Origin: Perkinsus chesapeaki ATCC PRA-425
Lineage: Eukaryota; Protista; Perkinsozoa
DNA length: 51,707 nucleotides
NCBI GenBank assembly: GCA_013115145.1
Contig: JAAPAO010000216.1
Coordinates: 1 to 51,707, forward strand
Reading direction: 5' to 3'
Under the pieces are notes generated by a model. That model saw nothing but the letters and a program-made list of their open reading frames with translations. It made no database searches and was not told where the DNA came from. A program made the position numbers and the translations under genes. Positions 1 to 32,538 of the stretch are shown one piece after another; the stretch's first letter is position 1; the number at the start of each line of letters is the position of its first letter.

Positions 1-1065
1 CAACTTCATAGCAAACTCGCGGCCAAGTCCTTTAGAGGCTCCGGTTACAACAGCATACTCCTTACGAGTTGCCCTAACTGGCTTGAGGTTGTAAGGATAA
101 CCCATATTGAATATAGGTCCCTGTAGTTTCTGTACAATCCAGCATAGTGTCATACCCACAAGGATGATAGGTGCACACAACAACATAATCACTATGATAC
201 TAATCCATTCTATTAGATTGAATGGATAGGCACCCATAGATAATATCACTGGCAAACTTTGCTTCTCAGCCATAAACAAAATGAAAACAAAACTATTGGA
301 CACAGTATGCTCGGTAAGTACGCACTAGGGATACCAGATACGGTAGTCATGAATGCGATAGGTGAGTACTAGACCCGTGCACTAGCGACTTAGCTCTCAC
401 ACAACCAGCGCTCAGCGCTGTGTCGTGCTTGGATACTCGGCAAAAGCAATCCTCTCTGGCTACCTAGCACCGGCCGTCTCCAAGTTATTCGCGCGTTGGT
501 GTCGGATTTAGTATTCCGCTTCATATGTGCGCAAATCGTTTGGTCAATCAGTTCCACCCGAAAAGGAGTTGATATGCGGCAAGTGATCAATAGTTAACAT
601 AGGATGATAAGATAGCACTCTAGATATACCAAACCATGATTTCGCATGAGAGGCTGATTGTCTCATGATGGGACAATCAAAGTCCAATGAAGAAGGCACA
701 ATAATGTTTATCTCACCAAACCCTCTCTATCGACCTCAAGAAGTTTCACGAAAGCCAGAGGCAGCCTCGGTGAGGCTCCCTTCACTGGCTGGCGGCGAAT
801 AGATCGTCTACACTAGGTCCAGTAAGCTGTAGATGCACAGCATTCATCAGTAGGAGGATAAACAAAGATAACTCAACTGGAGAGCGCTAACCAGAGGGGC
901 CGGAGGATAGTTCCACGGCGGTGGCGTGGCGCCCAGTGCCATAACGCGGATCAACTCAGTGTGAATCCCATCCACATTGTATTTCAGAGCGCGTGACGCC
1001 ATAGCGATGGCAAAAATTGTGACACCAAAGCGCAGCCGACTTCTTGCATAAGTCATCTGCTGTAA

Positions 1066-5556: not shown

Positions 5557-13149
<7,593 letters not shown>

Positions 13150-13756: not shown

Positions 13757-16700
13757 ATGACACAAACTCCGAAGGTATCTAACAAGCAGCTTCTGCGTGC
13801 TACACCTGCTCGACTGAGGGTAGACTTTGCCATCGCCTTGCTTTGCATTTTTACGGATTTCCTCGGCGATAATTTGTTGGCTCCTTCTTACGAGCTCTTC
13901 ATTCGAGAGCACGGAGTGCCTGGTGAGCAATCACACAATCAGCCTCCTGTTTAGTATGATATTCATCAGGTATGGGATTCGGTCTCTCAACCTCGATTAT
14001 CACTATGTCGTTTATACTGGGAAGATGCTTCGCTTCGTCCGTGATGGGTCCTATTTCTGATCACACTGGTCGGTGGAATACAATAATGGTTTGCACTTTC
14101 CTCATGTCCGTAGGCTTCTTATTGCAGGTAGGTCGCTTGCCTTCATTTCTCTTATTCTGTTTTATCCTGGCAGGCACTGTCGTGGAACTTTTGGTCTCTT
14201 GTGGGTTTCCGACTATTTACAGGCTTTGTCGGCGGCACAAGAGTTGTTATCATTGTGTGAGTTAGATTAGACAACCGTCTCTACTTCAAATATCGACTAT
14301 TTTCTATTCAGGTACATTACCGACTGGATATCTGAGCGTAACATGCTCACATTCTGGATGTCATTCATTCCAATTGTGTCGAGTGTCTCGTCCTTTGTTG
14401 GCCCTTTTCTCGGAGGGATAGTAGCCGAAGTGAAACTGATCATCCATCCTGTTCTTCAATTCCCTTTCTTCAGGCCGATCCCTCTCAACCGTTGAACCCA
14501 GCATATGCAGGTCTCGCATTAAATGCCTGTAGTTTTTTACTCGTACTTTTCTTCATGAGGAGATCTCCTCACGATGGAGGTTTCCGTTTATTCAAAAAGA
14601 ATGTTGGAAACAAGAAATCGAGCTCGGCGGCAAAACCACTCAATTCGGTCGGTCCTCTAGTGGAATGGTAAACACACATTTTCAATATAATTATACTTGT
14701 ACACTTTCTTCAGGAATGCTGTCTTATTATGGTTCATCGTTTGTGGTATATCTAGCGCTGGCACTCAGGGTTGGTCAGTTCTCATTGTGACCATTCAAAA
14801 AGAGCTCGGCCTATCCAGTCTAGTCATTGGATCTATCAGTGGTTGGTGCGGTATCATGATTATAAGTAAAGTTGCGAATGATAAATCTTTCTTTAAATCT
14901 TAATCTTCTCAGTTGGTCAACTAGTTGTCCTTCCCATTCTCTTCCATCGTCTGAAGCTATCTGAAGGAGCGGTGGTTGTCTTTGGTTTTTCACTTTCTTT
15001 ATTTATAATCATTCTCGGTTTCGTCTCCAATGTGTGGGTTACAATAATCATCGGATCTTTTTTCTCTTTGGGAATTCCACTCGTAATGACAATGGGATTC
15101 TCGGTAAGTGTTTGATTGATAGTGAACCTTGAGGGTACTATATGCTCAGATATTCTCGAGGCTCTGTGACCCGTCGAAGAAGAGCTTAGTGGTGGGCCTT
15201 ATGGCTCTCGATCTGAATGCATTCAAAATCCTTTCTATTTTGCTCAGTGGATTATTATATGACATGAGCAAATGGACGCCCTACTTCTTTGTAAGGAGTG
15301 TCTGTATCACTTCAGTTCCGCCTGCGCCCGTTTCTTTTGAATCACGTGCTTGATAGTCCTGGCGTGCTGCATCATTCCTCTTTCTACTCTTTCAAATTAG
15401 AATAGTCGATGCTCCAAACGCTCACTCCTAAACCCCATGGGCTAAAGGCTGTATAGAATGTACTTGTTAATCTACGAGGCATTTCAAGACTTATCCGACG
15501 GCCGGTTTGAGTCATCACTAGATATATCACGTACACCATCTTTATCTCTGTTTAGTTGTTCTGTCTGGTTACTATCGGCCTTGTGACCGGATTCATCCTC
15601 ATTAGAGTGATGCCATCTGCTCTGAGGAGGAGGAGCAAAGTCAAAGTCCTATTGGCTGCAACTGAAATTAGCAGGTCTCGATGTGATATCAACTTTGAGA
15701 AAAGAGTAAGCACAGTCCAGTTCTGCGATTGGATTTGTAAACTCTTTCATGCCATTTACGGAAATTTTTCGATGAAATCGTCGGGCCGACCTATATTCTC
15801 CGATTAGAGTCTTCGGATGTTTCGGCGGGTATCTACCGAACGAGTCTGCGTTCCTCTTTTCATATGGTTGCTTTATAAGGCTTTTTTATCCTCTTAGCGA
15901 TCCCTCCACACACGGCTAGCATTTGCCAACGAGGAGACTCAGGGCAACGTTCTTGCATTGCCGTATGGACGGGCGACCGAGGATGAGCTCGAGTCTGTTA
16001 TGGCATGGCTTAAAGCTTGTGTATTCCTACCGCCGAGAACGGTGTCGCATAGCAAAGGGGTGAGTAGAATATAACTGACCATATCTTCTTATTAGCCGAT
16101 TCAGGACCTAGTTCCGGATTTGTTGAAGTCACTATTGGGGAGGTGGACAACGAGAATGCTAGAGCATCACGGTTATGTTAATTGGTATGAATGTGATGGT
16201 GAAATAGAGATGTTATTGAATGCAGGTGAGTTGAATGACATAACATAGATTCCCAATCTAATTTTATAGGATTTCCTCCACTTCGTTTGGAACCAGAACA
16301 CCAACGACTCATGCGTCTCCAAGATCATTATTACTCCCTGGAGCGTCACTTGGCAGCTTGTCGCGCCTTCTCGTCCAAGAATCCTGCTGTCGATGGTGAG
16401 CCCGTGTTTAATGGCTCGACTGTATCTCGATTTGTCTCAGTTTCTGAGCGGCTAATGAGAGCCGTTTCCAAATTAAGATCTCCTCCTCACCAAAAACCGA
16501 CTCTCGCAATGCGTATCAACTTTGGTCGCTGGTTGGCTCGATTTCTGAATGAAAGAGGATACCAATCGTGGCCCAGCTGGTTCTCTGACGGCCGAGTAAT
16601 CCCGACTCTCCTGCGGAGCACTTTTCCACCTATTAAGTCCAAGAAGGATTCTGCTTTACGGAGTCTAGCAGTTCTCTCCCCTCCACTCAAAGCAAGCTTA

Positions 16701-16757
16701 GATAGCCAATCCACGACTGCAAGCGGTGGCCTTCGATCTAGAAAGCGCGTGCCTTAA
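13757..16757 (+). CDS. MFS transporter copy 1 (DHA1/TetA-like) with C-terminal extension, multi-exon
   Basis: DFLGDNLLAPSY in TM1, motif A-like GPISDHTGRW, FRLFTGFVGG, antiporter-type GPFLGG and multiple hydrophobic exons. The last exon ends at the stop of ORF 16287-16757. Confidence 0.88.
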
Positions 16758-17048
16758 GATACCGCTATCGGCCTCTCACACATCGGCATTTGTTTGTTAC
16801 CACGAGTCTATATTATTCACTTATCACGATGATCGTATGGCCTACTACCACCATTCTTAGTTTAGTCTTCCCATTTTCTCTTTGTCGTAACAGCTTTGCA
16901 TCTCGCCACTCATCCTTGTACTGTTGTGTTGCTACATATTACTGTTATGATACTAGAGCGGTTGAACTACTGGGGATTAGCGTAGGCAATGCTACGGAGA
17001 ATGACGTGTTCTCTGTTGATCGATCAGCATTTCGAAAAGCGAGGGTAG

Positions 17049-17120
17049 AGGTCCTATCGGGATTCGAACCCGAGTCGCTGGATTCAAAGTCCAGAGTGCT
17101 AACCGCTACACTATAGGACC
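17049..17120 (-). tRNA. tRNA-Gln(TTG)
   Basis: Near-identical to the tRNA at 12852-12923; full cloverleaf. Confidence 0.95.
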
Positions 17121-17176
17121 TGGTTAATTGTATTTGCTGTCCTGCTCCTGGAGTCTTAAGACCGGATCCTTACAAC

Positions 17177-17279
17177 GTGTTTACCACAAGGACGTTCCAG
17201 TGCAACGCCATCCTAGTTCCCTACTATCCGACAATCATGATGCCCGAAACTTGGGAGAGCAGGAGAATATGAAGAGCAT
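17177..17279 (+). pseudogene. Decayed relic of the DHX16 last exon
   Basis: 17177-17217 matches 12988-13028 at about 29/41 nt, and 17250-17279 matches 13080-13109 at about 24/30 nt. Same offset from the adjacent tRNA-Gln. The acceptor AG has become AC. Confidence 0.7.
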
Positions 17280-17872
17280 CTGAGCGGGATGGGTCTGGCC
17301 TTTCGTTCTGTCGAAGGGAATCCTGACTGCTTGTCCACGGACTAGGCATACACTGTAAACAAGAGTGCATATCACTGAAAGAAACAGGACAGGGAAACGG
17401 TATAGCAAACGGTTCTAGAAGTGAATTTGTCTCCTTGTTGGGGAGTCCTATTCTTCAAATGCAGACCCCCCTTGAAACCGGCCTCGTTTTTACCACTCTC
17501 CCCAATTCTCTTATGTACCTCCACTTTGTAAAGACCGAGCATCGAGATAATTTCCAAGAAAGATTAGTATCGCTGATATCATTCTCGGATAGATGGGGAG
17601 ACATGGCGCATACTTCACGTCACGGAGCGGAACATGGCGCGATGCATGGACTTGCACATACCATTTTGTTCAGAATATTTTCCTCTCGACCGCAATTGAG
17701 AGTGTTGATCTGCAGTTGATTAGCCACCGCTAGCTGGCCAAGCTCGTCTCGCTATTCCTCGCCGCACATTGTTGAGATCGCTGCGAGTTCCGCGCCCCGC
17801 GTGGCGCACTTTGGTGACGTAAAGGGCGTTACGAAGGTATTCGCTCCCGTTCGGCGATTGTAGTTCAACTTT

Positions 17873-20800
17873 ATGACACAAACTCCGAAGGTATCTAACA
17901 AGCAGCTTCTGCGTGCTACACCTGCTCGGCTGAGGGTAGACTTTGCCATCGCCTTGCTTTGCATTTTTACGGACTTCCTCGGCGATAATTTGTTGGCTCC
18001 TTCTTACGAGCTCTTCATTCGAGAGCACGGAGTGCCTGGTGAGCAACTACTAATCAGCTTTCTGTTTAGTATGATATTTATCAGGTATGGGATTCGGTCT
18101 CTCTACCTCGATTATCACTATGTCGTTTATACTGGGAAGATGCTTCGCTTCGTCCGTGATGGGTCCTATTTCTGATTATACTGGTCGGTGGAATACAATA
18201 ATGGTCTGCACTTTCCTCATATCGATAGGCTTCTTATTGCAGGTAGGTCGCTTGCCTTCATTTCTCTTACTCTGTTTTATCCTGGCAGGCACTGTCGTGG
18301 AACTTTTGGTCTCTTGTGGGTTTCCGACTATTTACAGGCTTTGTCGGCGGCACAAGAGTTGTTATCATTGTGTGAGTTAGATTAGACAACCGTCTCTACT
18401 TCAAATATCGACTTTTTTCTATTCAGGTACATTACCGACTGGATATCTGAGCGTAACATGCTCACATTCTGGATGTCATTCATTCCAATTGTGTCGAGTG
18501 TCTCGTCCTTTGTTGGCCCTTTTCTCGGAGGGATAGTAGCCGAAGTGAAACTGATCATCCATCCTGATCTTCAATTCCATCTCTTCAGGCCGATCCCTCT
18601 CAACCGTTAAACCCAGCATATGCAGGTCTCGCATTAAATGCCTGTAGTTTTTTACTCGTACTTTTCTTCATGAGGAGATCTCCTCACGATGGAGGTTTCC
18701 GTTTATTCAAAAAGAATGTTGGAAACAAGAAATCGAGCTCGGCGGCAAAACCACTCAATTCGGTCGGTCCTCTAGTGGAATGGTAAACACACATTTTCAA
18801 TATAATTATACTTGTACACTTTCTTCAGGAATGCTGTCTTATTATGGTTCATCGTTTGTGGTATATCTAGCGCTGGCACTCAGGGTTGGTCAGTTCTCAT
18901 TGTGACCATTCAAAAAGAGCTCGGCCTATCCAGTCTAGTCATTGGATCTATCAGTGGTTGGTGCGGTATCATGATTATAAGTAAAGTTGCAAATGATAAA
19001 TCTTTCTTTAAATCTTAATCTTCTCAGTTGGTCAACTAGTTGTCCTTCCCGTTCTCTTCCATCGTCTGAAGCTATCTGAAGGAGCGGTGGTTGTCTTTGG
19101 TTTTTCACTTTCTTTATTTATAATCATTCTCGGTTTCGTCTCCAATGTGTGGGTTACAATAATCATCGGATCTCTTTTCTCTTTGGGAATTCCACTCGTA
19201 ATGACAATGGGGTTCTCGGTAAGTGTTTGATTGATAATGAATCTCGATAGCGTTATCCGCCCAGATATTCTCGAGGCTCTGCGACCCGTCGAAGAAGACC
19301 ATCGTTTTGGGCCTTCTGGCTTTGGAAGCAAATTCCTTCAAAGTCATGTCTATTATTCTCAGTGGAGTATTATATGACATGAGCAAGTGGACGCCCTACT
19401 TCCTGGTAGGCAATTCTCCACAGAAGTTTACCTCTTGAAACTTCCTGCTCTCACGTTCATATCCGATGGGGTTACTGAGTCGCGGCACCCCGTGTGTGGA
19501 TCTGTGCTCTGCCTCCTGACCACGTGCTATGTGTTATTGTATGGTATGCAATATGAGAGCTCGATATAATGCCTATCAGATCGGCGCCAACCACATTGAA
19601 ACCGCAACAGGGTTACTATGGCTTATTGTTATATCACGTACACCATCTTTATCTCTGTTTAGTTGTTCTGTCTGGTTACTATCGGCCTTGTGACCGGATT
19701 CATCCTCATTAGAGTGATGCCATCTGCTTTGAGGAGAAGGAGCAAAGTCAAGGTCCTATTGGCTGCAACTGAAATTAGCAGGTCTCGATGTGATATTAAC
19801 TACGAGAAAAGAGTAAGCAACCCCTACGTAGAGTTCCTGGCCTTCTCGGTCCAAAAAAGTGAGGCCCTTAAAGTGGGCTCGTAAGCACATTAAGCCTTTA
19901 TCGGACAAGGATACGCAGATTTTCTCATGGCAGCGTGCATGCCTCCCAATTGAAACGTTTTTTAACGGGAATTGACTTGCATTCTAGTCTCTCCTTCTCG
20001 GTAGTGCGGTCTATCTACTATATTCTGCATCCTCAGCGGTTGCTCCACATCCGTCTAGCGTTTGGAAACGAGGAGACTCAGGGAGATACGCTCGCCCTGC
20101 CATATGGACGAGCGACAGAGGAGGAGCTTGAGTCCATCATAACGTGGTTGAAGGAATGCGTCTTACTGCCGCCGAAGACGGCACCTCCTGGCCGAGGAGT
20201 GAGTGTCTCTATGATTAGTACTCGAACTGCGTAGCTTTAGGACCTTGTTCCGGATTTGTTGAAGTCACTGTTGGGGAGGTGGACAACGAGAATGCTAGAG
20301 CATCACGGTTATGTTAATTGGTATGAATGTGATGGTGAAATAGAGATGTTATTGAATGCAGGTGAGTTGCATGACATAGCATAGATTCCCAATCGAATTT
20401 CATAGGATTTCCTCCACTTCGTCTGGAACCAGAACACCAACGACTCATGCGTCTCCAAGATCATTATTATTCCCTGGAGCGTCATTTAGCAGCTTGTCGC
20501 GCCTTCTCGTCCAAGAATCCAGCTGTCGATGGTGAGCCCGTGTTCAATGGCTTGACTGTATCTCGATTTGTCTCAGTTTCTGAGCGGCTAATGAGAGCCG
20601 TTTCCAAATTAAGATCTCCTCCCCGCCAAACACCGACTCTCGCAATGCGTATCAACTTTGGTCGCTGGTTGGCTCGATTTCTGAATGAAAGAGGATATCA
20701 ATCGTGGCCCAGCTGGTTCTCTGACGGCCGAGTAATCCCGACTCTCCTGCGGAGCACTTTTCCACCCATCAAACGCAAGAAGAGCTCCGCTTTACGGAGC

Positions 20801-20893
20801 CTAGCAATTCTTTGTCCTTCATATACGAAGAGCACGGTAGACCCTAGTATAGGTCCTACGGGCGGCTTACGGTTCAGAAAGCCGGCCGCTTAG
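17873..20893 (+). CDS. MFS transporter copy 2, close duplicate of copy 1
   Basis: Same exon structure at an offset of about 4116 nt. Large tracts, including introns, are nearly identical to copy 1. Confidence 0.88.
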
Positions 20894-21154
20894 CTCTATC
20901 TGGTCTCGTGGCTTCCTCACGGGCCTCATAATTTTCTTGAGTCAATTCTGATCATTTCTGAGCAGATCACTTCGGCTCCCCATAAGATTTCTTCTGCCAT
21001 TTTCCACATCTCCTAGTCGATACTTCTCTCATTAAACTTAATAATGTTGAGTTGGTATAGGCACTAGGCTTTGATTCTCGCGTGCAAATGCGAGTTACAC
21101 GTATGCTGAGAACTGCACGTCGCTCGTGCCACCAACGAGCATGTTAGAGGTGAA

Positions 21155-21226
21155 AGGTCCTATCGGGATTCGAACCCGAGTCGCTGGATTCAAAGTCCAG
21201 AGTGCTAACCACTACACTATAGGACC
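21155..21226 (-). tRNA. tRNA-Gln(TTG)
   Basis: Third near-identical copy; full cloverleaf. Confidence 0.95.
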
Positions 21227-21488
21227 GTCGGGAATCGCGGCTCCAGTTCTTAGAAGGTCACTATTTGACACGCATGAATTCAGTTTATGTTACTGTAGCG
21301 GCTGCAGTGTAGCCCATTTAGCACTTTTCAGGTTGTGCGATTGGGTTCTAGTGACCAGCGAGGCTCCATTATGTCAGGCAACTGCGAACATAAAATGACG
21401 ACTGTCGTCTCTTGCAAATGTGATGTGCAAGAGGGCATATCAATTTTGGGGGGGGGGGCTAAACTTCCTCATCTCAGCCTTTATACCC

Positions 21489-24400
21489 ATGGTAGTTGCC
21501 GACCAAGGCACCGATGAGAGGCATCCATTCCTGCGGACTCCTTTGCGTATCCGAGTAGATTTTTTGATCGGGCTACTGTGTGTCTTTGGGGACTTTCTCG
21601 GTGACAACTTACTTGCTCCTTCGTACGAGGTCTTCATCCAGCAGCACGGGCCGCCAGGTGAGCTTCTACATTATCAGAGGGCAACGCAATCGATTAACAA
21701 GATATCCCGACGGCGCCGAGCCGGTCTCGGAAAAAAGTGTTTGTCTATCTGAATTCGTCCCCATAAAGAGACTTTTTACGATTGATATACCTCTCAGTGC
21801 ATTTGTGAGTTCTACTTGGAATTCACACACCTTGCCAGCGAGGAGGCGACCACGGTCATGTGATTTAATGGCTTCAGGCCTGGAGTTTGGATTTGCCACT
21901 TCGCTCATCACAGCTGCTTATCTCGGTGGGAGGGGCGTTGCTGCCTCCTGCTCCGGCACCGCCACAGACTTCCTCGGCAGATGGAACGTCTTGCTGTTCT
22001 GCACCATCGCGACAGCCACTGGTTTTCTCTTGCAAGTAGGTTCTTTTTTCAACCCCAGACGAGCCCGGGCCTCTCCTCAGGCATTGGCATGGGACTTTTG
22101 GTCATTGGTGGGCTTCCGGTTGCTTACCGGTTTTGTTAGCGGGACACGAGCAGTCGTAGTTGTGTAGGTGGCCGCGAAGATTTCGTCTGGATGACAACGC
22201 CGGCAGATACATTTGTGATTGGGTTTCCCAGCCAAGTCTCCTCAACTTCTGGATGTCTCTCATCCCAGTGGTCTCTAGCACATCCTCGTTCATCGGCCCA
22301 CTCGTAGGAGGGATTGTTGCGCAAGTAAGATACTCCAACACGGAGTCTGAATCCCCCCCGGCAGGCCGATGAAAGCAACCCGCTGAATCCTGCGTATGTC
22401 GGGTTCGCTCTAAACGCCATGGCATCTCTCCTGGTCATCCTGGCTATGCGGAAGTCGCCTCTGGACAAGGACAAGCGTCTCGGTGGAATCTTCAAATCGT
22501 CGCCCAGACCATCTACGTCTAGTGTGTCCGAGCGGTCGATAAACTCCTCTGGATCCCTCGTTGAGTGGTGGGTTAACTTAGGGAAACACGCATCGTAACA
22601 GCATCGAGCCGCTCCGTTCGAACATATAGGAATGGTCAAGGCTTCCTATTTAGCTCTTAGTTTTCTCTATAAGTTTTGCTGCAAATTGAGGCTCTATGGA
22701 ATATCGACTCCTGTTGCCTATTTTCTTCCCCAATAAGCTGCACTATTCAGGTACGCCATCCTCCTTCTTATAGTTTGCACCGCTGCATCTAATGCAGGGA
22801 CGCAAGGATGGTCGGTGCTACTGATCACCATTCAAAAAGAGCTCCACTTGTCCAGTCTGATGATTGGTCTCGTCAGTGGGGGATGCGGCATCATGGTTAT
22901 TGGTAAGCACCCTAAGATGTCTCTTCTATTCCTTGTGCTCAGTCGGTCAGCTATTGGCTCTACCCTTCATGATGGGCAAATTGAGATGGTCCGAAGCCCA
23001 AGTCATGCTGTTTGGTTTCACCATTTCACTATCTATAATCGTTGCTGGTTTCGTCACCAGCCTCTGGGTCACTCTGATCATCGGCGCAGTCATTTCTCTC
23101 GGACTGCCGCTGGCCATGACCGTCGTCTTCGCGGTGAGTGCCCCGAATAGAGATAGTTTTTTTCCAATCACCATCTCTGCTAATGTTTCTCGAACTCCTT
23201 GGCGAATTTAGGTCTTCTTGCTAGCCCCCCCATCCTTAGGAAGCGAGATTGTCATAACTTATAACAATATATGACTTATAAGGTGTTCAACCCACCTTCC
23301 TTCTCTGACATTGAGCATCCATCATTGAGCATCTCTCTTCCAGATGTTTTCGAGACTATGTGATGAATCGGTGAAGGGGAGAGTGGTGGGGATCGTAGCG
23401 CTAATGTCCAATTTGACCAAGGTTGTTGCGGTTTTGCTCACAGGATTCCTGTATGACATTGCCAAGTGGATCCCTTATGTTATGGTGAGTGGATTTCCAT
23501 CGGCTTGTACGCTCTTTGAGGGGACAGAAGTTGTGTCACGTACTGTGTTTTCGAATCCACGATGGCCTCATTGAGCCTGGCAAGTATTTGCGTCGTTCGC
23601 GTGATAATCTTTTTGGGCATTCCGTAATAGTATGGTTGGATTCGTCCGATTCAGTGACACTGAATCAGTGTAATTCTCTCAGTTATTTTTCGCCGCCCTT
23701 TGTGGCATAGCTGCCAGCGTTGCCCTTCTCAAAGAGCTTCCTCGGGCGTTGGCCAGTCGAAGGAGCAAAAAGCTTCTGATATCTGCAACAAGGCCTTCTG
23801 CGAAATCATCCCTCTCTGAGAGTGATATTGTTTACGATGAACGCGTAAGTCGAAGACAGTGATTTGCGCATGTACTCGTCGAGTACAGAGGATAACGTTA
23901 AAAATAGAATAACAAGTATAGAGTGTCTGTTAAGCTGGTTCGTCCTGCTAGACTTCGGGGCCCGGAGTTCGGGTGCATCACTCGTACAGTATAAGCAGCC
24001 ATTAACGAAAGCTAGTTCAGCTAAAACAGCGAAAGACGTTTGTCAACACTCTTAACGTTGCAAGGATTCCATCACTCGTTCCGTACTGCGTAGTATGCAG
24101 TTGGCACCCTTGCATAACTCGGACCGTTTTTCCTGGAATAGTCGCACAGGAGACAATATACAAATACACATAATGCGGCACAGAATCGCTTAGGCTCGGC
24201 TTTCTCGGTATCGGCTCGCCTCAATTTCCTATTGCGTTAGGGTCGGGGTCTGCATCATCGTCTTGGTTTTGATTATCAAGATGAACGGCAGAGTACATTG
24301 GGCATGCCGTTCGGCCGAGCCAGTGTTGATGAAATTGAAGAGATCATGAATTGGGTGAAGGCCGGACTTGATAGAAGACCGAGGCTGCCATTCGAGAGCA

Positions 24401-25388
24401 AGGCGGTGAGTTTTGACTTCGGTTTGCCGAGTGTCACCCCAGTGTAGGGGTTTAATACATTAACTGGCATTTGACATCAACTGCTCTATATGACTTCCAA
24501 AAAGTGAGCAATAAACTCTACTTAATCGATACTGGGTATACTGATATGAGGTATACTATATAACTTCAATTCTGAGCTACATTCTTTGCATGTTAAGGGC
24601 CTTTGAGATATGCTTCGGAGTTAACCTTTTAGAGGGCTTGCAAATCCGGGAATAACATTTCGGCTCCTTCGGGGTTGAAGCCTGCTATCGTAGGATTGGC
24701 TATGAATCGCGATAATACTATTTCCGTTATTTGAAGCCTAACACACTTGTACAGCGGCGAATTCCGACTCAGGTCATCATACCGGATCTGGTGAAGGCTC
24801 TCCTTGGTCGCTGGACTACAAGAATGTTGGACGCACATGGCTATCGCAATTGGTTGCAATGCATTGATGACGTTTACGCGCTACTCGGAAATGGTATGCG
24901 TTTCAGCAGCTTTCTCGCGCTAGTTTCTCGACCAGGATTTCCCAACTTACGAGCAAGTGATGGTGCGACTCCGTCGGTTGACCGCAGATTGTTCATCTTC
25001 TATATGACCTTGATGAAGCACTTAGCCGCCTGCCGGGGGCCGGAGAACAGGGGGGCTTTGAGGCGAGAGAAGAGTAAGGGATAGCTTCGAAGAAGCATGA
25101 CGCATTGTGCAATCAGTTCCTATAAGCGTCCTAGCAGTGGTGTCCCGGCTGACCGCGCGCCCTAAAAATACTGCCACTGAGACTCAGCGAATCATTTTTG
25201 GTCGAAGGCTCAGCGACTTCCTCATTTCCCGAGGATACATGAGTTGGCCAGGATGGTTTGCAGATGGCGAGAATCTACATATTCTTTTACGCAGTACATT
25301 CCCCCCGTTGGGCTCTAAACCTAAGTACTCCCTCTACAGTTTGAGTGTACTGGCTAAAGCCTATGCGAGGGAGACCAAAGTCTATTGA
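21489..25388 (+). CDS. MFS transporter copy 3 (divergent paralog) with C-terminal extension
   Basis: MVVADQGTDERHPFLRTPLRIRVDF..., GDNLLAPSY, GTATDFLGRW, GPLVGG and PLVEW at intron positions equivalent to copies 1 and 2. Last exon ends ...AYARETKVY*. Confidence 0.85.
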
Positions 25389-25631
25389 TACGGTTGGTTG
25401 GGTAGCTCTGTTAAGTCGTCTTTCTGCGGTCTTGAGGTCCCCAGTTCGTTTGCGTTCCGGTATCCATAGCAGCTGACGCTCGCCAGAATTCTTGATGATA
25501 TTGTATTCTTGTATGTGTTAATGACTACCCATTTTTTGCCATGTATTGTTGAACATTTTCACGGTCACCGAGCTCAACTACGGATCACGTTTCACTGATG
25601 TTCTTGTGGTGTTGCTGTGGGAATGATAGAA

Positions 25632-25668
25632 CACCTTTGCCGGGGGTCGAACTCGCGACTTATAGGTT
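25632..25668 (-). pseudogene. tRNA-like 3' half remnant (degenerate)
   Basis: Reverse complement AACCTATAAGTCGCGAGTTCGACCCCCGGCAAAGGTG has tRNA-like variable loop, T-loop and acceptor spacing. The T stem pairs poorly and no 5' half was found. Confidence 0.3.
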
Positions 25669-26677
25669 GAGTTCCAGGGAGACACGTTGTGTTACGACAG
25701 CTCCTCCGTCTGTCCCGCTGTTGATTTGGTAGCGGTGAATAAAAAATACGTTTTTTTCGAATTGTATTAGCTCCTAAAGTGAAAACATTGTATTTCGAAT
25801 TTTACGAAATCATGCTTTTTTCATCTTGAAGTCGTCAGAGCTACTGCGCGTCGAATTTATGTGTAGGTTTCTAAGCCCTCGTTGTGGTGTAGATATATAA
25901 ACCCAATCGTCTCTTCCGCTCCACAGCCATAGGGTATCGGCCATGATGTATTTATAATCGGTAGCGAACGGTAGATCTCTCGTGGATCCACTGATTACCA
26001 AAAAGTAGAATGATGTGAAATATCTCATGCCTGTTGTACAGCTCGTTTGAATGAGTTCAACTGGGGGAGGTGGGATGAATTGGGACAAGTGTCGACCATT
26101 CTTGTGCAAAATTTCAAGGAACTGGCTCGCTCCTCGGAACGGGATGTTCATGCTGGCATGCTGACTTACCGTGGTTAGACGGCTCCCGGCTTCTTTGTTG
26201 CCACCTAATAGAGCCCGCTGTTGGGTAACGCACGCATGCGCATCACAGACGTCGCTTTATGATAATACGATACTATTAGAACCAGCAAATTCGTCTTGGC
26301 TCCCATGAAGGAAGAAAGGGAAGAATAGTCTAGATAGATCAATTCCTCACGATCGATTAAAATTCACCGTTTTGCTCGGTTCCTCCAGCACTCGGTGATT
26401 CTCGAAAGGGTACCGAAAGCATAGCTATCCTGATTTGGCTTGTTGATCGCCGTGCAAGTTCCCCAGTGCAACATCTGAGATGTTTATTGGTTAGTTTCGC
26501 CGCTTCCCCATGGTGAGGTGAATTCGCTACGAAAGTTCGTGCAAATCAATGGGACAAATGAGCCCCCATTGCGACAATTTAATGCATTAGTTTCTGCAAC
26601 AGACAATCTCCCAACGAGCTTGAGCCATTGGAGATCGATAACCCAGTGGCATCAGTTCTATTGTTTCTCGTTCCTCT

Positions 26678-29600
26678 ATGGCCGCTGAGATTGATGAGGC
26701 CAAAAAGCACCCATTCTGGCGCACTCCCTTGAAGGTCCGAGTCGACCTATTAGTTTGTCTTGGATGCGTCTTCGCTGACTATCTTGGAGACAATCTGTTA
26801 TCACCATCATACGACGATTTCATAACTGAAGAAGGCCCCTCTGGTGAGTGCTAGGTCTGGCGCTGCGTCCTCTCCCGGAGGCAACCAAACAGCACACTCT
26901 TGAAGTCTGCTGTTTGGAAATTGCCAGCTGAGCCACATCCCGCAAGGTTAGGTCACTGACAACAGCATCCTACGTTTTCCGCATAGACCGCTTTAAGATA
27001 GCTCCTATGGTTCAGGTATGGACTTCGGTTTGGCCACGTCAGTCATAACATTATCGTATATTTTGGGAAGAGCGGTATCGGCCTCAATGCTCGGCACAAT
27101 TTGTGATTTTGCCGGCAGATGGAATGTTATTGTTGTTTGCACTTTCCTTACTTCCTTAGGCTTTCTCCTACAAGTAAGTCCTACCACTCGTCACTTCATT
27201 ATTCCTCCTTGTTAGGCTCTAGCTTGGAACTATTGGTCCCTTGTTGGCTTCCGTTTATTCACAGGCTTGGTGGGCGGCACTCGTCCGGTCGTTATTGTGT
27301 AAGCTCTCATTGCTTTGCTATGATGCCCCTTCTCCATAGTTCAGCCACTCGCCCCGTCTTATTCATTCGCTTCTCCGCTCGTAATTTAATTTCAAGGAAT
27401 TTCATCGGAGCCGTTGCAGTTTCGAATTGCAAATATCTTATTCCTTGTTGAAACTTTTTGTTTATAAGCCCTCGGGAGACTTTATGATGATGTTATATAC
27501 AGTCTTTCTTATTGTAGATATATATCAGACTGGATAAAAACCCCTGACATGCTTACCTTCTGGATGTCACTTATGCCGGTTGCCTCAAGCGTCGCTTCGT
27601 TTGTAGGGCCACTTCTAGGTGGTATAGTTGTCGAGGTAAGCGCCGCCGCTTTAATGACGTTTCTGGGATTCGGGAATCCTTAGTGAACGGGTTTCCACTC
27701 AACGCAATTGATCGATCTTACTGCTCATCACAAGCGTGTTGTGGACGAGGCGTGTCACCATCGCGCGTATTGCCCAATGCATTCGAATTTATAACTCGAA
27801 GCACTCCTCTCTACTAAGATAATCCTCTACCCACATCTCTTCTGTCGTCCGGGGATTCTATCTGATTCCAGGATGGATCAATTTTGATGGAGGCGAAGGA
27901 GTAGACGATCACCTACGGATGTTCTCAGGCCGATCCGACAAGTCCGTTGAATTCAGCCTATGTTGGCTTCGCCCTCAACTTCACTGGTTTCCTGTTGGTC
28001 CTATTCTGCGTGGATAAGTCGCCCGGAGATATCAGCGAGAAGCTGAGCCCGTACAAGTTGTGGAATATGATCATGCAGGAGGTTCATAAGTTGACCTCAT
28101 CGAAATCGAAGAGTCCCGAAGATGTACCATTGTTCAGGTCACCCGGTCCACTAGTCGAGTGGTAAGTATCTTCCTCCAGTAGTGCGGTTTGCGTACTCGA
28201 TCACAGGGCGTTATAAGGCCTAGGTCTTGTGGGAGTCCAGTGTATAGGTGATGCTTGTATAAACAGTAGAGCAATAAAGGACTCTTATAAGAGCAACGCC
28301 TTCCGACAAGTGCGTCTGACCCCCGACGACAAATCTGTGAGATGGAGTGTCTAAAAAGGAAATAGTGATCTACCGACCCTATACGATGGAGAATTTAACG
28401 GAGATCGAATGTTCTGAGCTCAAAAACTTGAAAAGAGATTATAAGCGACAATAAAACAGTTAAATTGAAATTCAACATTGAGCAATAGTTATTTCTGAAC
28501 CTATAACAGGCAATTGCTTCTTATTTCTCCCGTGTCCTCCAGAAATAGCTCCAGTGAGGTGGAGGTTCTTCATCGATGTCACCACCTTCAGGTCAGCTAT
28601 AATACCCTTTATGCTAGCCTGTGGTTTATCAAACGCTGGCACCCAGGGCTGGTCTGTCCTCCTTGTTACCTTACAACAAGATCTTGGATTCTCAAGTCTT
28701 GTTATGGGCCTAATAAGTGGTTGGTGTGGTGTGTGGATAATAGGTGAGCCTGCCAGTTATCAGAGATATCCAGCATGAGCTGTGTCGCACCGTGGCTGCG
28801 TTATTCTCAATTCCATATTGTGGATTACAATACTTTTCTCCTCTCTTCAGTGGGCCAACTACTGTTCCTTCCATTTGTATTGAAGCACCTTCACTGGACA
28901 ATGGCCACTCTTATGATATTTGGTTTCGCTGTGTCGACGTGTATAATCGTACCGGCCTTCGTCAACAACATATGGATCATCTGCGTCGTTGCCGCCATTT
29001 TCTCCGCGGGGCTCCCTCTTGCCAAGACCGGCGTATTCACTGTAGGGCATAGGAGTTAGTCGAATTAGCACTCGGTTGCTCAGATGTTCCCCCTTCTATG
29101 CGATGTTACTGTTAAGGGCCGAGTGATGGGCCTGACTACGGTCGTTTCCAATGTGTCCAGGTGTATATCGAGTATCCTGTGCGGTGTACTCTATGATATT
29201 AAGAGATGGATCCCCTATACTATGGTAGGCTACCTTACGTTGGAGCTGTCACTGAAGCTGTTGATAATGTTACCAGTGGATGGGGACAGTTAAAATCATA
29301 CTAGTCGTCTCACCGGGTCCCCTTTACCCTCTGGCTCTCTGTTGTAAAACATCTAAGCTACGGTCCCTATCGCGTTTATTCGACATGGTTAAACGAAAAG
29401 CGATAGCATCTTCCATCATGGAAGATAGAAGTCCCATGTAGGGGCAGCTCTTTCGACACTACTAACGCGTTCGACTGATGGCGTCATTAGTCTGTACTCC
29501 TTGGCAGCCTTCATTGAACCTTCTTTTTAGTTACTGGGTTTTATGTTCGTCGGTATCGGTGTTGGTATATTCCTCATCTACTCACTCCCCAAGGCACTGG

Positions 29601-31530
29601 ACCATCGTCGCCGGATGAACCTGGCCATGGCCGCCGCTCGAACAAGTAGGGATAAGTCTGAGAGCAATCAACTATGGAAAAAGGTGAGCCGAACACATTC
29701 GATTGTTGCTGAGTCGTGCTATCCGCGAATAGGGAAGGACTAAACCTTCCCGGAGCAAAGCTGTGAATTCTCATTGAGCTTTTGCCTCTTAGAATGGACA
29801 TAGTATAGCGAGTAAGGCGTGGACCACTCCCACCGATACCGTTGTGCCATTTTAATGCCAGGGATATCATTCATTGAGCCCCTTCGATTGGTATGTGTCA
29901 CACTATCAAACTCGCCGAATACGAAAAGCTACGAGGGATGGGCCCATATTTTTAATACATCATGTATATTGTGCGTCCAAATTTGTTAGGCAAATTCGGA
30001 AAATCTTTGGACGGTAACAAAGCGTGCCATTTGACTTTTCGCTCGCCCTAGAGCGATGAAACGGTGATCGATTTGGTTAGTCATGACAATAATATATGTC
30101 CCTGACGTCTACGCAACAAATATTGATTTCGTATCGGAACTCGTTTTATTCGTCAAGTTATAGAGATTTTTCGAATTTGCCCAACAAATTTGGACGCACA
30201 GTAGTGAATTATGCGTACTTTTCGCCCGTCACGGGAGGATCTCTTTATGACAGTGTTGTTCCCTTTCAGCGCAGCCTCGTCGATCGGTTCGCATTCGATG
30301 CCCTCGAGGAGCAGCACTACTACTATTTAGCACCGTTCGGGGCAGTCACTGAGAAGGAGGTTGACAGTTTGTTGGAAATGTCCAAGCAGGGGGCAAGAAG
30401 AATGCCCAGACTATGCTTTCAAAGCAAAGCGGTGAGTCTAGTATAGAGTCCTTCCGTACAGTGTCATTTCCTTCTGAAAAATTCACGTTGTTGTTATTTG
30501 AGGAAGTCCATCATTATGCCATCAAGTTGGTGTCGCCAAAACCAGATCTCATGACCAACCTACTATAAGCTTATCGCACATGCGTTCAATCCACGTGTGT
30601 GGTATTATTTGAAGCATGAGGTGTTTTCACTTAATACATATTCCTATCCTCTTCACTCGGGCCTCTAGCTAGTTGCCTTTCATTTGCTGATAATGACTAG
30701 ACTCATACAGGTAATCATTCCGGATATAATGAAGTTGCATCTGGGGCGCTGGACAAGTAAAATGCTCGAGGCCCACGGCTATCGCAACTGGGATGCCTGC
30801 CCACAAGACTTACAGCTCCTCCTTGAAAATGGTAAAGGGTTCGATTGGGAATAAGACATAAACGTTGTTCTTCCAGGCTTCCCGACCTTGCGTGGTGGAG
30901 CAGGATCGACCTCCAGCGAGCGATTGATAGCCTTCTATAATACACTGCTAGCCCACAAGGCAGCGTGTGTGGCCTATCACCAGGAGGAGCCAGACCATCA
31001 ACTTATGGGTGAGCAACTATTCCTGGTGTCGGGGCTACTGGCACTTGTAGACGAGCCCCTTAGTTGTGCGCAGAAAAAAACATGTTCTTGGTTATCTAGT
31101 AGCTCGATATCTCAAACTAGCTATGCGTTTATGGTAGACGGCTTATAAAATTAGTCGGCAGCAGTTTGGGATGGAACCCGAACGGTACAAGTTACATTTT
31201 CAGCAAGTGTGATTCTATTGACTAGTAACCATTTCCAGTTTGATGGCATTGTCTTTCCGTTTAGTACCACTACGTATTTCGGAAGCTGTCTCGAGGCTGC
31301 GGCAAAAGCCTGCCAGCGAGCCGCTACCTTGTCGCCGATTGGACTTCGGTCGCCGCTTGAGCAACTTCCTTGTCGAGCACGGTCATCTGAATTGGCCGGG
31401 ACTATTCGAAGACGGTCAGTTCTATCACATAATGCTGCGGAATACTTTCCCACCATTGAAGCCAAATTACCAGAAGGCTCTCCAAAGCATAGCGACTCTG
31501 GCGGCGCATAACAATACCAACAGCTACTGA
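26678..31530 (+). CDS. MFS transporter copy 4 (divergent paralog) with C-terminal extension
   Basis: MAAEIDEAKKHPFWRTPLKVRVDL..., GDNLLSPSY, GTICDFAGRW, GPLLGG and PLVEW. Last exon ends ...AAHNNTNSY*. Confidence 0.85.
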
Positions 31531-31665
31531 GTGTTCAACTGCTTTTGGCCTGTCGTCATCGTCGCTTATCCGGCTAAGTGACACACTTTAGTTTCTCTCG
31601 ATGTCTTGAGTCCCATTGTATCTTGTTGTCAATTACTTTGGTGTAGAGGTTTTGGGATCTTCCCT

Positions 31666-31868
31666 ATGCCCACGGAACTTCCGGAGCATCTTAGCGCTAT
31701 AGAAGATTCACAGGAGGTCGATCGGCGCCTACTTGCGAGGCATGCTCTCGTGAGGGTTATTTCATGGATCTTCTCACCAGGTCTTCATCAGGTTGATGGA
31801 CTGATAGCCGGCTTCGTCCAAGGCTTTGAGAGGAAGTTTTTGAATAGTATGGAGGCAGATTTCCGCAG
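31666..31868 (+). CDS. Hypothetical coding fragment starting MPTELPEH
   Basis: Open frame within ORF 31606-31905 with internal GT/AG signals. Weak similarity to the start at 32539. Confidence 0.25.
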
Positions 31869-32538
31869 GTGGGCGGTCAATATTTGGTCTCAATGTCTGC
31901 TGTGAAAAGTCTCCAAAGTTTTCGACAATAATATCTTCATCGGCGTCATGTGGTTAGCCAGTAGGGGCGCTGAAATTAGACTCCGTTTCCCACTGTGCGT
32001 TGTGCAAGTTGGAGCCTTCGATGCCAACTGTACATATTCAGAACCCGAGCAGGGAATCCCTGCCAGGGACGCATGCAAATAGCGGGTTGCCTCCGGATTT
32101 ACATAAAATGGTCCTTCAGGCTGTCTGCTGCTAAGAATTACGGTATTCACCGTGATGGGTGGTCTATCGCAGTTGAAGAGCTGGAGCAGGTAGGTTACAG
32201 TACGCTGTGTGTATCTAACTATTTTGCCGGGTGGCTCGTAATACAGCCAATGGGACCATTACTGATCATTTAGTTATTCTTCATTATAGTATCGTCATTG
32301 TCGTCTATATTGTGATATTACATATAGTTGTTAACAGTATTAGGCAGTTTCATATTATAGAACTGTATAAAATATATACACAACGCACATAAAGTGGAGT
32401 CCGTATAGGCAAACAAATGACTTGATAATTTGGAAGCTAGACAAGGGCATAGATTGGCCCAAAAACTGAAGGTGCCAAGCAGGCATTCTCTTACGTTAGC
32501 TCATCCACCCTCTACTAAGCATTGACGAAGATATTCAC

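Follow-up and report, generated by a model that had tools for sequence, protein, structure and literature searches.

DHA1-type carriers of the major facilitator superfamily (MFS) are some of the most thoroughly studied transporters, and they usually consist of the twelve helices and little else. In some other membrane carriers a compact cytosolic domain follows the membrane part. Examples are the STAS domain in SLC26/SulP, the CBS pairs in CLC and the C-terminal domain in CDF/ZnT, and these domains regulate transport, bind ligands or partners, or mediate dimerisation. The DNA discussed here is a contig of Perkinsus chesapeaki ATCC PRA-425 (JAAPAO010000216.1; all of its 51,707 nucleotides are referred to as the window). 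Species of this genus are major oyster and clam pathogens. Four tandem genes on the + strand of the window, g1 to g4, encode MFS transporters with a long C-terminal tail. It is fairly likely that these genes encode DHA1-like carriers with twelve transmembrane (TM) helices and a globular C-terminal domain with an internal duplication; this domain would probably be cytosolic and is proposed to have a regulatory or docking role.

The carrier core and its junction with the tail

To judge from its sequence, the core of these proteins is an ordinary DHA1-like (TetA/NorA-like) MFS transporter. Pfam MFS_1 (PF07690) matches the Perkinsus proteins P0006, P0026 and P0038 with 100, 98 and 90.6 bits, respectively (cut-off 33.4), and the exons of the P. 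chesapeaki array give partial matches to Pfam MFS_1 and Sugar_tr. For g1 and g2 single exons and no spliced model were used, the full-length sequences being those of public models. NorA of Staphylococcus is the closest solved protein, and residues 29-428 of P0006 align with NorA 9-381 (E 5e-7) in a match that spans twelve helices. By this end-to-end alignment the core has twelve helices in two halves of six each; hydropathy alone, in a crude scan, left some of them unresolved. Of the NCBIfam models, Tet(A)/Tet(B)/Tet(C) (NF012174) fits best; it covers residues 66-402 of P0006 with an E value of 1e-17. An earlier note on this DNA had described the core as DHA1/TetA-type. The resemblance holds in the NorA and Tet alignments, but membership does not, as the Tet model gives 63.9 bits against a cut-off of 475 bits. 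Because this score is so far under the cut-off, the likeness is one at the level of the superfamily or subfamily only and the substrate cannot be inferred from it.

NorA and the Tet(A)/Tet(B)/Tet(C) pumps have the 12-TM core in common with the Perkinsus proteins. However, they stop a few residues past TM12 (388-424 amino acids, aa), whereas the Perkinsus proteins have a further 240-290 residues between TM12 and the stop codon. The figure of about 300 aa given for the tail in the earlier note was a fair one.

The evidence of the DNA points to core and tail being parts of one gene, with the splicing inferred. When the + strand reading frames were compared all against all, the conserved blocks fell into four collinear sets, each of which begins with about nine MFS exons; the introns of the contig are short and of the GT-AG type. 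The conservation of the TM12 exon ends at a strong donor (GTAAGC, GTGAGC or GTAAGT) where there is no stop codon, and it picks up with the very first residue of exon A, right behind an acceptor; exon A has no conserved ATG. At each remaining junction, from exon A through B to C, the four copies have a GT-AG intron that keeps the frame and lies at the matching position. At the break between exon B and the GFP.LR motif the intron shifts the frame in g1 and g2 and is in frame in g3 and g4, and the latter two have an additional intron before motif 2. Such differences between copies are the behaviour of exons that belong to one gene. Transfer RNA (tRNA) genes for glutamine occur only between the end of a tail and the start of the following MFS gene, and none lies between core and tail.

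Public gene models and a sequence from an uncultured eukaryote agree with this arrangement. P. olseni has the same array on contig JABAHT010000463 (L001), with a DEAH helicase gene and then four MFS-plus-tail units. Core and tail are fused in the public models of two of these four units (687 and 695 aa), and in the model of the third unit (P0005, 306 aa) the tail follows directly on the last TM exons. P0006 and the P. chesapeaki model P0043 are examples of public models with such a fusion. In P. chesapeaki the public models P0043 (g4) and P0042 (g3) use the inferred junctions. The environmental protein P0011 is encoded by one uninterrupted open reading frame (ORF) of 372 codons (L002 1696-2814) that contains the C-terminal helices of an MFS protein, an Ala/Gly-rich linker and one unit of the tail. 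It is collinear with residues 340-586 of P0043 (E 4e-10), whose N-terminal half is in turn matched by the ORF upstream of P0011 (E 1e-16).

Some observations speak for a different arrangement, in which the tail would be encoded by a gene of its own, always found next to and downstream of an MFS gene, as a conserved pair and not a fusion. The model of the fourth P. olseni unit is split into a 427-aa MFS protein and, directly after it, the stand-alone 190-aa protein P0003, and P. olseni P0008 (375 aa) separates the tail from the core and begins in exon A. No RNA run was listed as containing this DNA, and two runs labelled as the species yielded a single 54-base piece of the contig and no joints. 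A separate gene is nevertheless very improbable given the donor without a stop codon at the end of the TM12 exon, the acceptor without a conserved ATG at exon A and the restriction of the tRNA genes to the spacers after the tail. The stand-alone tail models either omit the conserved exon A or begin within it, and in P0011 the MFS helices and the unit share a single intronless ORF. The fusion of tail and MFS core put forward in the earlier note is supported by the junctions, the public models and the P0011 ORF, as far as can be read from sequence.

The tail is coding and under purifying selection. Between g1 and g2 the ratio of nonsynonymous to synonymous substitution rates (dN/dS) of the tail is 0.25 over 255 codons, which is below 1, the condition for which the earlier note had proposed a test. 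In more distant pairs the proportion of synonymous differences (pS) is saturated at 0.75-0.89 and that of nonsynonymous differences (pN) is only 0.19-0.37; the tail of g3 and that of its P. olseni ortholog give a pS of 0.75 and a pN of 0.19.

The duplicated unit and its predicted fold

Exon A, which is the P(Y/F)G segment of the earlier note, has the pattern R.L..R..F ... P.G ... E ... K ... P, and nine of its positions are invariant among 8 sequences from two species. Motif 1, LGRWT..ML..HGY.NW, lies in exon B and is followed by GFP.LR. In exon C, GFP.LR is followed by a helix that ends in H.AAC, then by a variable stretch and by motif 2, FGR[WR]L..FL..[RH]G[YH]..WP..F.DG....LR.TFPP; in g3 and g4 one further intron splits this part. 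All of the motif strings listed in the earlier note were located on the + strand of the four genes where it had placed them.

Motifs 1 and 2 are homologous by their sequences. When the halves of P0003 are compared, BLASTP aligns repeat 1 with repeat 2 at E 8e-7 with 31% identity over 45 residues, and profile-profile comparison with hhalign gives a probability of 94.5% and an E value of 8e-8. When both repeats are aligned together with the environmental sequences, the L, W, F and P are invariant and the G, G and Y are near-invariant. The internal duplication proposed at the outset is confirmed by these sequence matches. The helix limits predicted for the two repeats agree as well: helix 1 runs from 7 residues before to 9 residues after the conserved G in both, and helix 2 ends directly before F-P.

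An AlphaFold2 model of residues 450-691 of P0043, built from a 20-row alignment, has a mean predicted local distance difference test score (pLDDT) of 80.3, with 121 residues at 90 or above, and a predicted template modelling score (pTM) of 0.78. Confidence is low for the linker, which makes up roughly the first 35 residues, and from about residue 40 the model is compact and all-helical. Each repeat would be a three-helix unit of about 65 residues, in which helix 1 with G-R-W/R is followed by the G-Y/H-x-x-W loop, helix 2, the F-P-x-L-R/K loop and helix 3. The predicted domain of about 200 residues would consist of the exon A segment with one helix, repeat 1, a linking helix and repeat 2. Between TM12 and this domain lie a juxtamembrane stretch of basic character and a linker of low conservation, and three or four further exons encode the helical domain. 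The earlier note had placed the motifs between diverged linkers; the model instead predicts one compact domain that includes exon A and the linking helix. Confidence in this model is lowered by its input, as the 20 aligned sequences are mostly paralogs, and by the result of an earlier AlphaFold2 run on P0003 with a 10-row alignment, which reached a pLDDT of 51 and was kept out of the fold search.

Searches of family and structure libraries gave no relative of the tail. No Pfam family was found at E <0.01 for any piece of the tail and none recurred among 20 members at E <=10, which upholds the view of the earlier note that the tail has no known Pfam domain. Sequence profile searches of the tail against PDB gave no significant match and there was no NCBIfam match. 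STAS, CBS, SPX, cNMP-binding and TrkA/RCK domains were present neither in the Pfam scans of the tail nor among the structural neighbours listed. When the P0043 tail model was compared with PDB by Foldseek, the best E value was 0.46 at a template modelling (TM) score of about 0.15, with the same outcome within the top 1000, and the best TM score in the ESM Atlas was 0.35. The ESM Atlas feature search gave nothing usable for P0003 and only generic MFS clusters for P0011. Two candidate relatives, the N-terminus of eS19 (E 0.37) and a GH5-CBM6 xylanase (E 0.049), were rejected; both matches are non-significant and neither protein is among the structural neighbours listed. No published paper on the Perkinsus tail domain was found. 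A Toxoplasma Spinster-like MFS protein (PMC12871999) is a different MFS, for which no C-terminal extension, domain or tail is mentioned. Public records label the Perkinsus sequences 'hypothetical protein' or 'MFS profile domain-containing protein'. The carrier belongs to a known kind; in the libraries tested, the domain appended to it is new.

The lack of a fold match in the searches with the model is compatible with a new fold. Weak or missing fold matches do not prove one, and short helical units are difficult to place. The tail could belong to a known helical domain family and have diverged too far to be recognised here, with the eS19 and xylanase matches as its weak echoes. Such an origin seems rather unlikely in view of the low Foldseek scores and the failure of any Pfam family to recur among the 20 members scanned.

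Distribution, origin and layout of the array

A profile search of 1.84 billion representative proteins at E <=0.001 gave 11 matches, of which seven are from Perkinsus and four, all weak (E 3e-5 to 7e-4), are from uncultured eukaryotes. The weak matches are P0010 from the Tara Oceans metatranscriptome catalogue, P0011, which represents an ENA/JGI/Logan cluster of 13, and P0012 and P0013 from JGI metagenomes. Three further relatives of P0012 came from a word search in which the widened profile was used. The environmental profile matches Perkinsus repeat 1 with an hhalign probability of 98.1% (E 1e-13) and repeat 2 with 96.1% (E 4e-9). A scan of metagenome DNA with three environmental rows found two contigs only, one of which is L004, and there an ORF for the C-terminal half of an MFS protein lies just upstream of the unit. 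A whole-protein word search with P0006 at E <=1e-10 gave Perkinsus proteins only, at a threshold that is strict for distant MFS relatives. Homology of exon A to the region upstream of the environmental unit was considered and is not claimed; MAFFT aligned the two, but the hhalign match did not extend there.

The hypothetical proteins of P. olseni and P. marinus (KAF4655494.1, which is P0006; KAF4655490.1, which is P0005; Pmar_PMAR019275, which is P0002) are orthologs in which the MFS core, exon A and the two repeats are all present, and their genes stand in a syntenic array of four that follows a DEAH helicase gene. They do not differ in kind from the P. chesapeaki proteins. Several of their models are split, truncated or fused to neighbours. 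The environmental MFS fragments (P0010, P0011 with its cluster of 13, P0012, P0013 and P0039-P0041) have the same three-helix unit and, where the flanks are known, as in two of the four matches, it stands behind a related MFS core. They carry one unit, whereas the Perkinsus proteins carry two. The novelty claimed for the four genes holds in so far as the tail matches no known family, but the unit is peculiar neither to these genes nor to Perkinsus, as its single-copy form is found in uncultured marine eukaryotes. The one-unit forms behind a related MFS core indicate that the unit predates Perkinsus, in which its duplication took place. It probably began as an addition to the C-terminus of this MFS subfamily and was then tandemly duplicated in the Perkinsus lineage. 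Amplification of the whole gene would have followed, giving the four-copy array that is common to P. chesapeaki and P. olseni.

Table 1. Coordinates of the four genes, their tail exons, the tRNA genes and the predicted tail helices
Feature	Position	Strand	Description
g1	13757-16757	+	MFS gene with tail; conserved blocks, GT-AG introns, ATG and stop
g1 TM12 exon	15556-15705	+	
g1 TM12-to-A intron	15706-15897	+	
g1 exon A	15898-16059	+	
g1 exon B	16105-16225	+	repeat 1 helices 1-2
g1 exon C	16270-16754	+	repeat 1 end, linker, repeat 2
g1 stop	16755	+	TAA
g2	17873-20893	+	conserved blocks, GT-AG introns, start/stop check
g2 TM12 exon	19663-19812	+	
g2 TM12-to-A intron	19813-20036	+	
g2 exon A	20037-20198	+	
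g2 exon B	20241-20361	+	
g2 exon C	20406-20890	+	
g2 stop	20891	+	TAG
g3	about 21489-25388	+	start ATG 21489 or 21423; conserved blocks, GT-AG introns
g3 TM12 exon	23683-23844	+	
g3 TM12-to-A intron	23845-24240	+	
g3 exon A	24241-24405	+	
g3 exon B	24773-24893	+	
g3 middle exon	24936-25073	+	
g3 exon C	25117-25385	+	
g3 stop	25386	+	TGA
g4	26678-31530	+	conserved blocks, GT-AG introns, ATG and stop; product P0043 (691 aa, FOL47_003679)
g4 TM12 exon	29531-29683	+	
g4 TM12-to-A intron	29684-30269	+	
g4 exon A	30270-30431	+	
g4 exon B	30711-30831	+	
g4 middle exon	30877-31008	+	
g4 exon C	31265-31527	+	
g4 stop	31528	+	TGA
tRNA-Gln(TTG)	12852-12923	-	spacer upstream of g1, marks unit boundary
tRNA-Gln(TTG)	17048-17120	-	spacer, g1 tail end to g2 start
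tRNA-Gln(TTG)	21155-21226	-	spacer, g2 tail end to g3 start
exon A helix	tail residues 44-55		predicted, AlphaFold2 model of P0043 tail
repeat 1 helices	tail residues 75-91, 101-111, 123-145		predicted, AlphaFold2 model of P0043 tail
linking helix	tail residues 157-167		predicted, AlphaFold2 model of P0043 tail
repeat 2 helices	tail residues 176-192, 198-203 + 207-215, 223-240		predicted, AlphaFold2 model of P0043 tail

Upstream of g4 there is no tRNA gene; in P. olseni a tRNA-Gln(TTG) gene lies upstream of unit c (L001 11416-11489). Since such a gene stands upstream of g1, g2 and g3 and of P. olseni unit c, the amplified unit seems to be tRNA, MFS and tail. The DEAH/HA2 helicase gene is found upstream of the array in both P. 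chesapeaki (about 11001-13146) and P. olseni (L001 1-3893). In P. olseni models it is fused to the first MFS gene, probably wrongly (1276 aa in L001; P0048, 1167 aa).

The second gene, g2, is a recent duplicate of g1. Their divergence is a mosaic, with a synonymous divergence (dS) of 0.07 in the MFS exons and 0.42 in the tail, and within the tail a pS of 0.68 in exon A and 0.08 in exon B. Such a pattern suggests that exon B and the 5' part have recently undergone gene conversion. The public model P0042 (FOL47_003678, 953 aa; 19663-25388) is a chimera in which the 3' part of g2 is joined to the whole of g3. The g2 part consists of the last MFS exons from just before the TM12 exon, exons A and B and the start of C, and the model bypasses the g2 stop and runs across a minus-strand tRNA-Gln gene. 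Retention of the intron after the TM12 exon (15706-15807 in g1, 19813-19884 in g2) would lead to a stop after 24-33 codons and may give a tail-less isoform of the carrier.

An ORF just past the g4 stop (31606-31905) resembles sequence that is appended to the tail in P. olseni P0007, P0038, P0033 and P0008 and that contains ..LVLRRNLVEEMVADFIGGF.., and in P0033 the appended sequence continues into a region resembling WD repeats. This sequence is either a neighbouring gene fused to the tail in the models or an alternative 3' end. Elsewhere in the window there are two perfect or near-perfect 18-bp tandem arrays, at 6081-6222 (7.9 copies) and 6316-6427 (6.2 copies), which have a common unit in a shifted register.

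Location and proposed role of the tail domain

The tail has no hydrophobic segment, its maximum 19-residue hydropathy being 0.9-1.05. It is probably cytosolic, to judge from this, from the topology of 12-TM MFS proteins, in which both ends are cytosolic, and from the basic stretch after TM12. The carriers with STAS, CBS or CDF domains have a similar architecture, a membrane carrier and then a compact cytosolic domain, but those domains have no sequence or fold similarity to the Perkinsus tail and the comparison is one of analogy only. By this analogy the most likely role of the tail would be that of a regulatory or docking module, which may couple transport or the location of the carrier to a cytosolic partner or ligand.

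A more specific role, that of a metal-sensing or metal-binding domain, is suggested by four residues of repeat 1. The His of HGY, the Cys after the W and the His and Cys in helix 3 (H..AAC) are invariant in all seven aligned Perkinsus sequences and would form the candidate site, and some eukaryotic DHA1-type MFS carriers transport metal chelators. This role is improbable, since the environmental homologs keep only the His in helix 3, repeat 2 is without the His/Cys set and the tail has no similarity to known metal-binding domains. With one of the four residues kept outside Perkinsus, a metal site would at most be a feature of the lineage.

The preferred reading is that of a regulatory or docking domain on a DHA1-like carrier. 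In a stronger form of it, the tail would be both a new fold and a new domain family, duplicated in Perkinsus, confined to perkinsids and a few uncultured marine protists, and serving as a cytosolic sensor or docking site that gates or positions the carrier. This form is possible and can be put forward only tentatively. If it is true, a conserved, duplicated cytosolic domain without relatives in Pfam, PDB and the ESM Atlas would be a new way to control or anchor a DHA1 carrier. The domain is restricted to few lineages and the proposal is testable. It is a small, well-defined target for structure determination and may add a new helical fold. As the family stands at four copies in at least two Perkinsus species, the domain provides a family-specific handle for studies of the localisation and function of these carriers.

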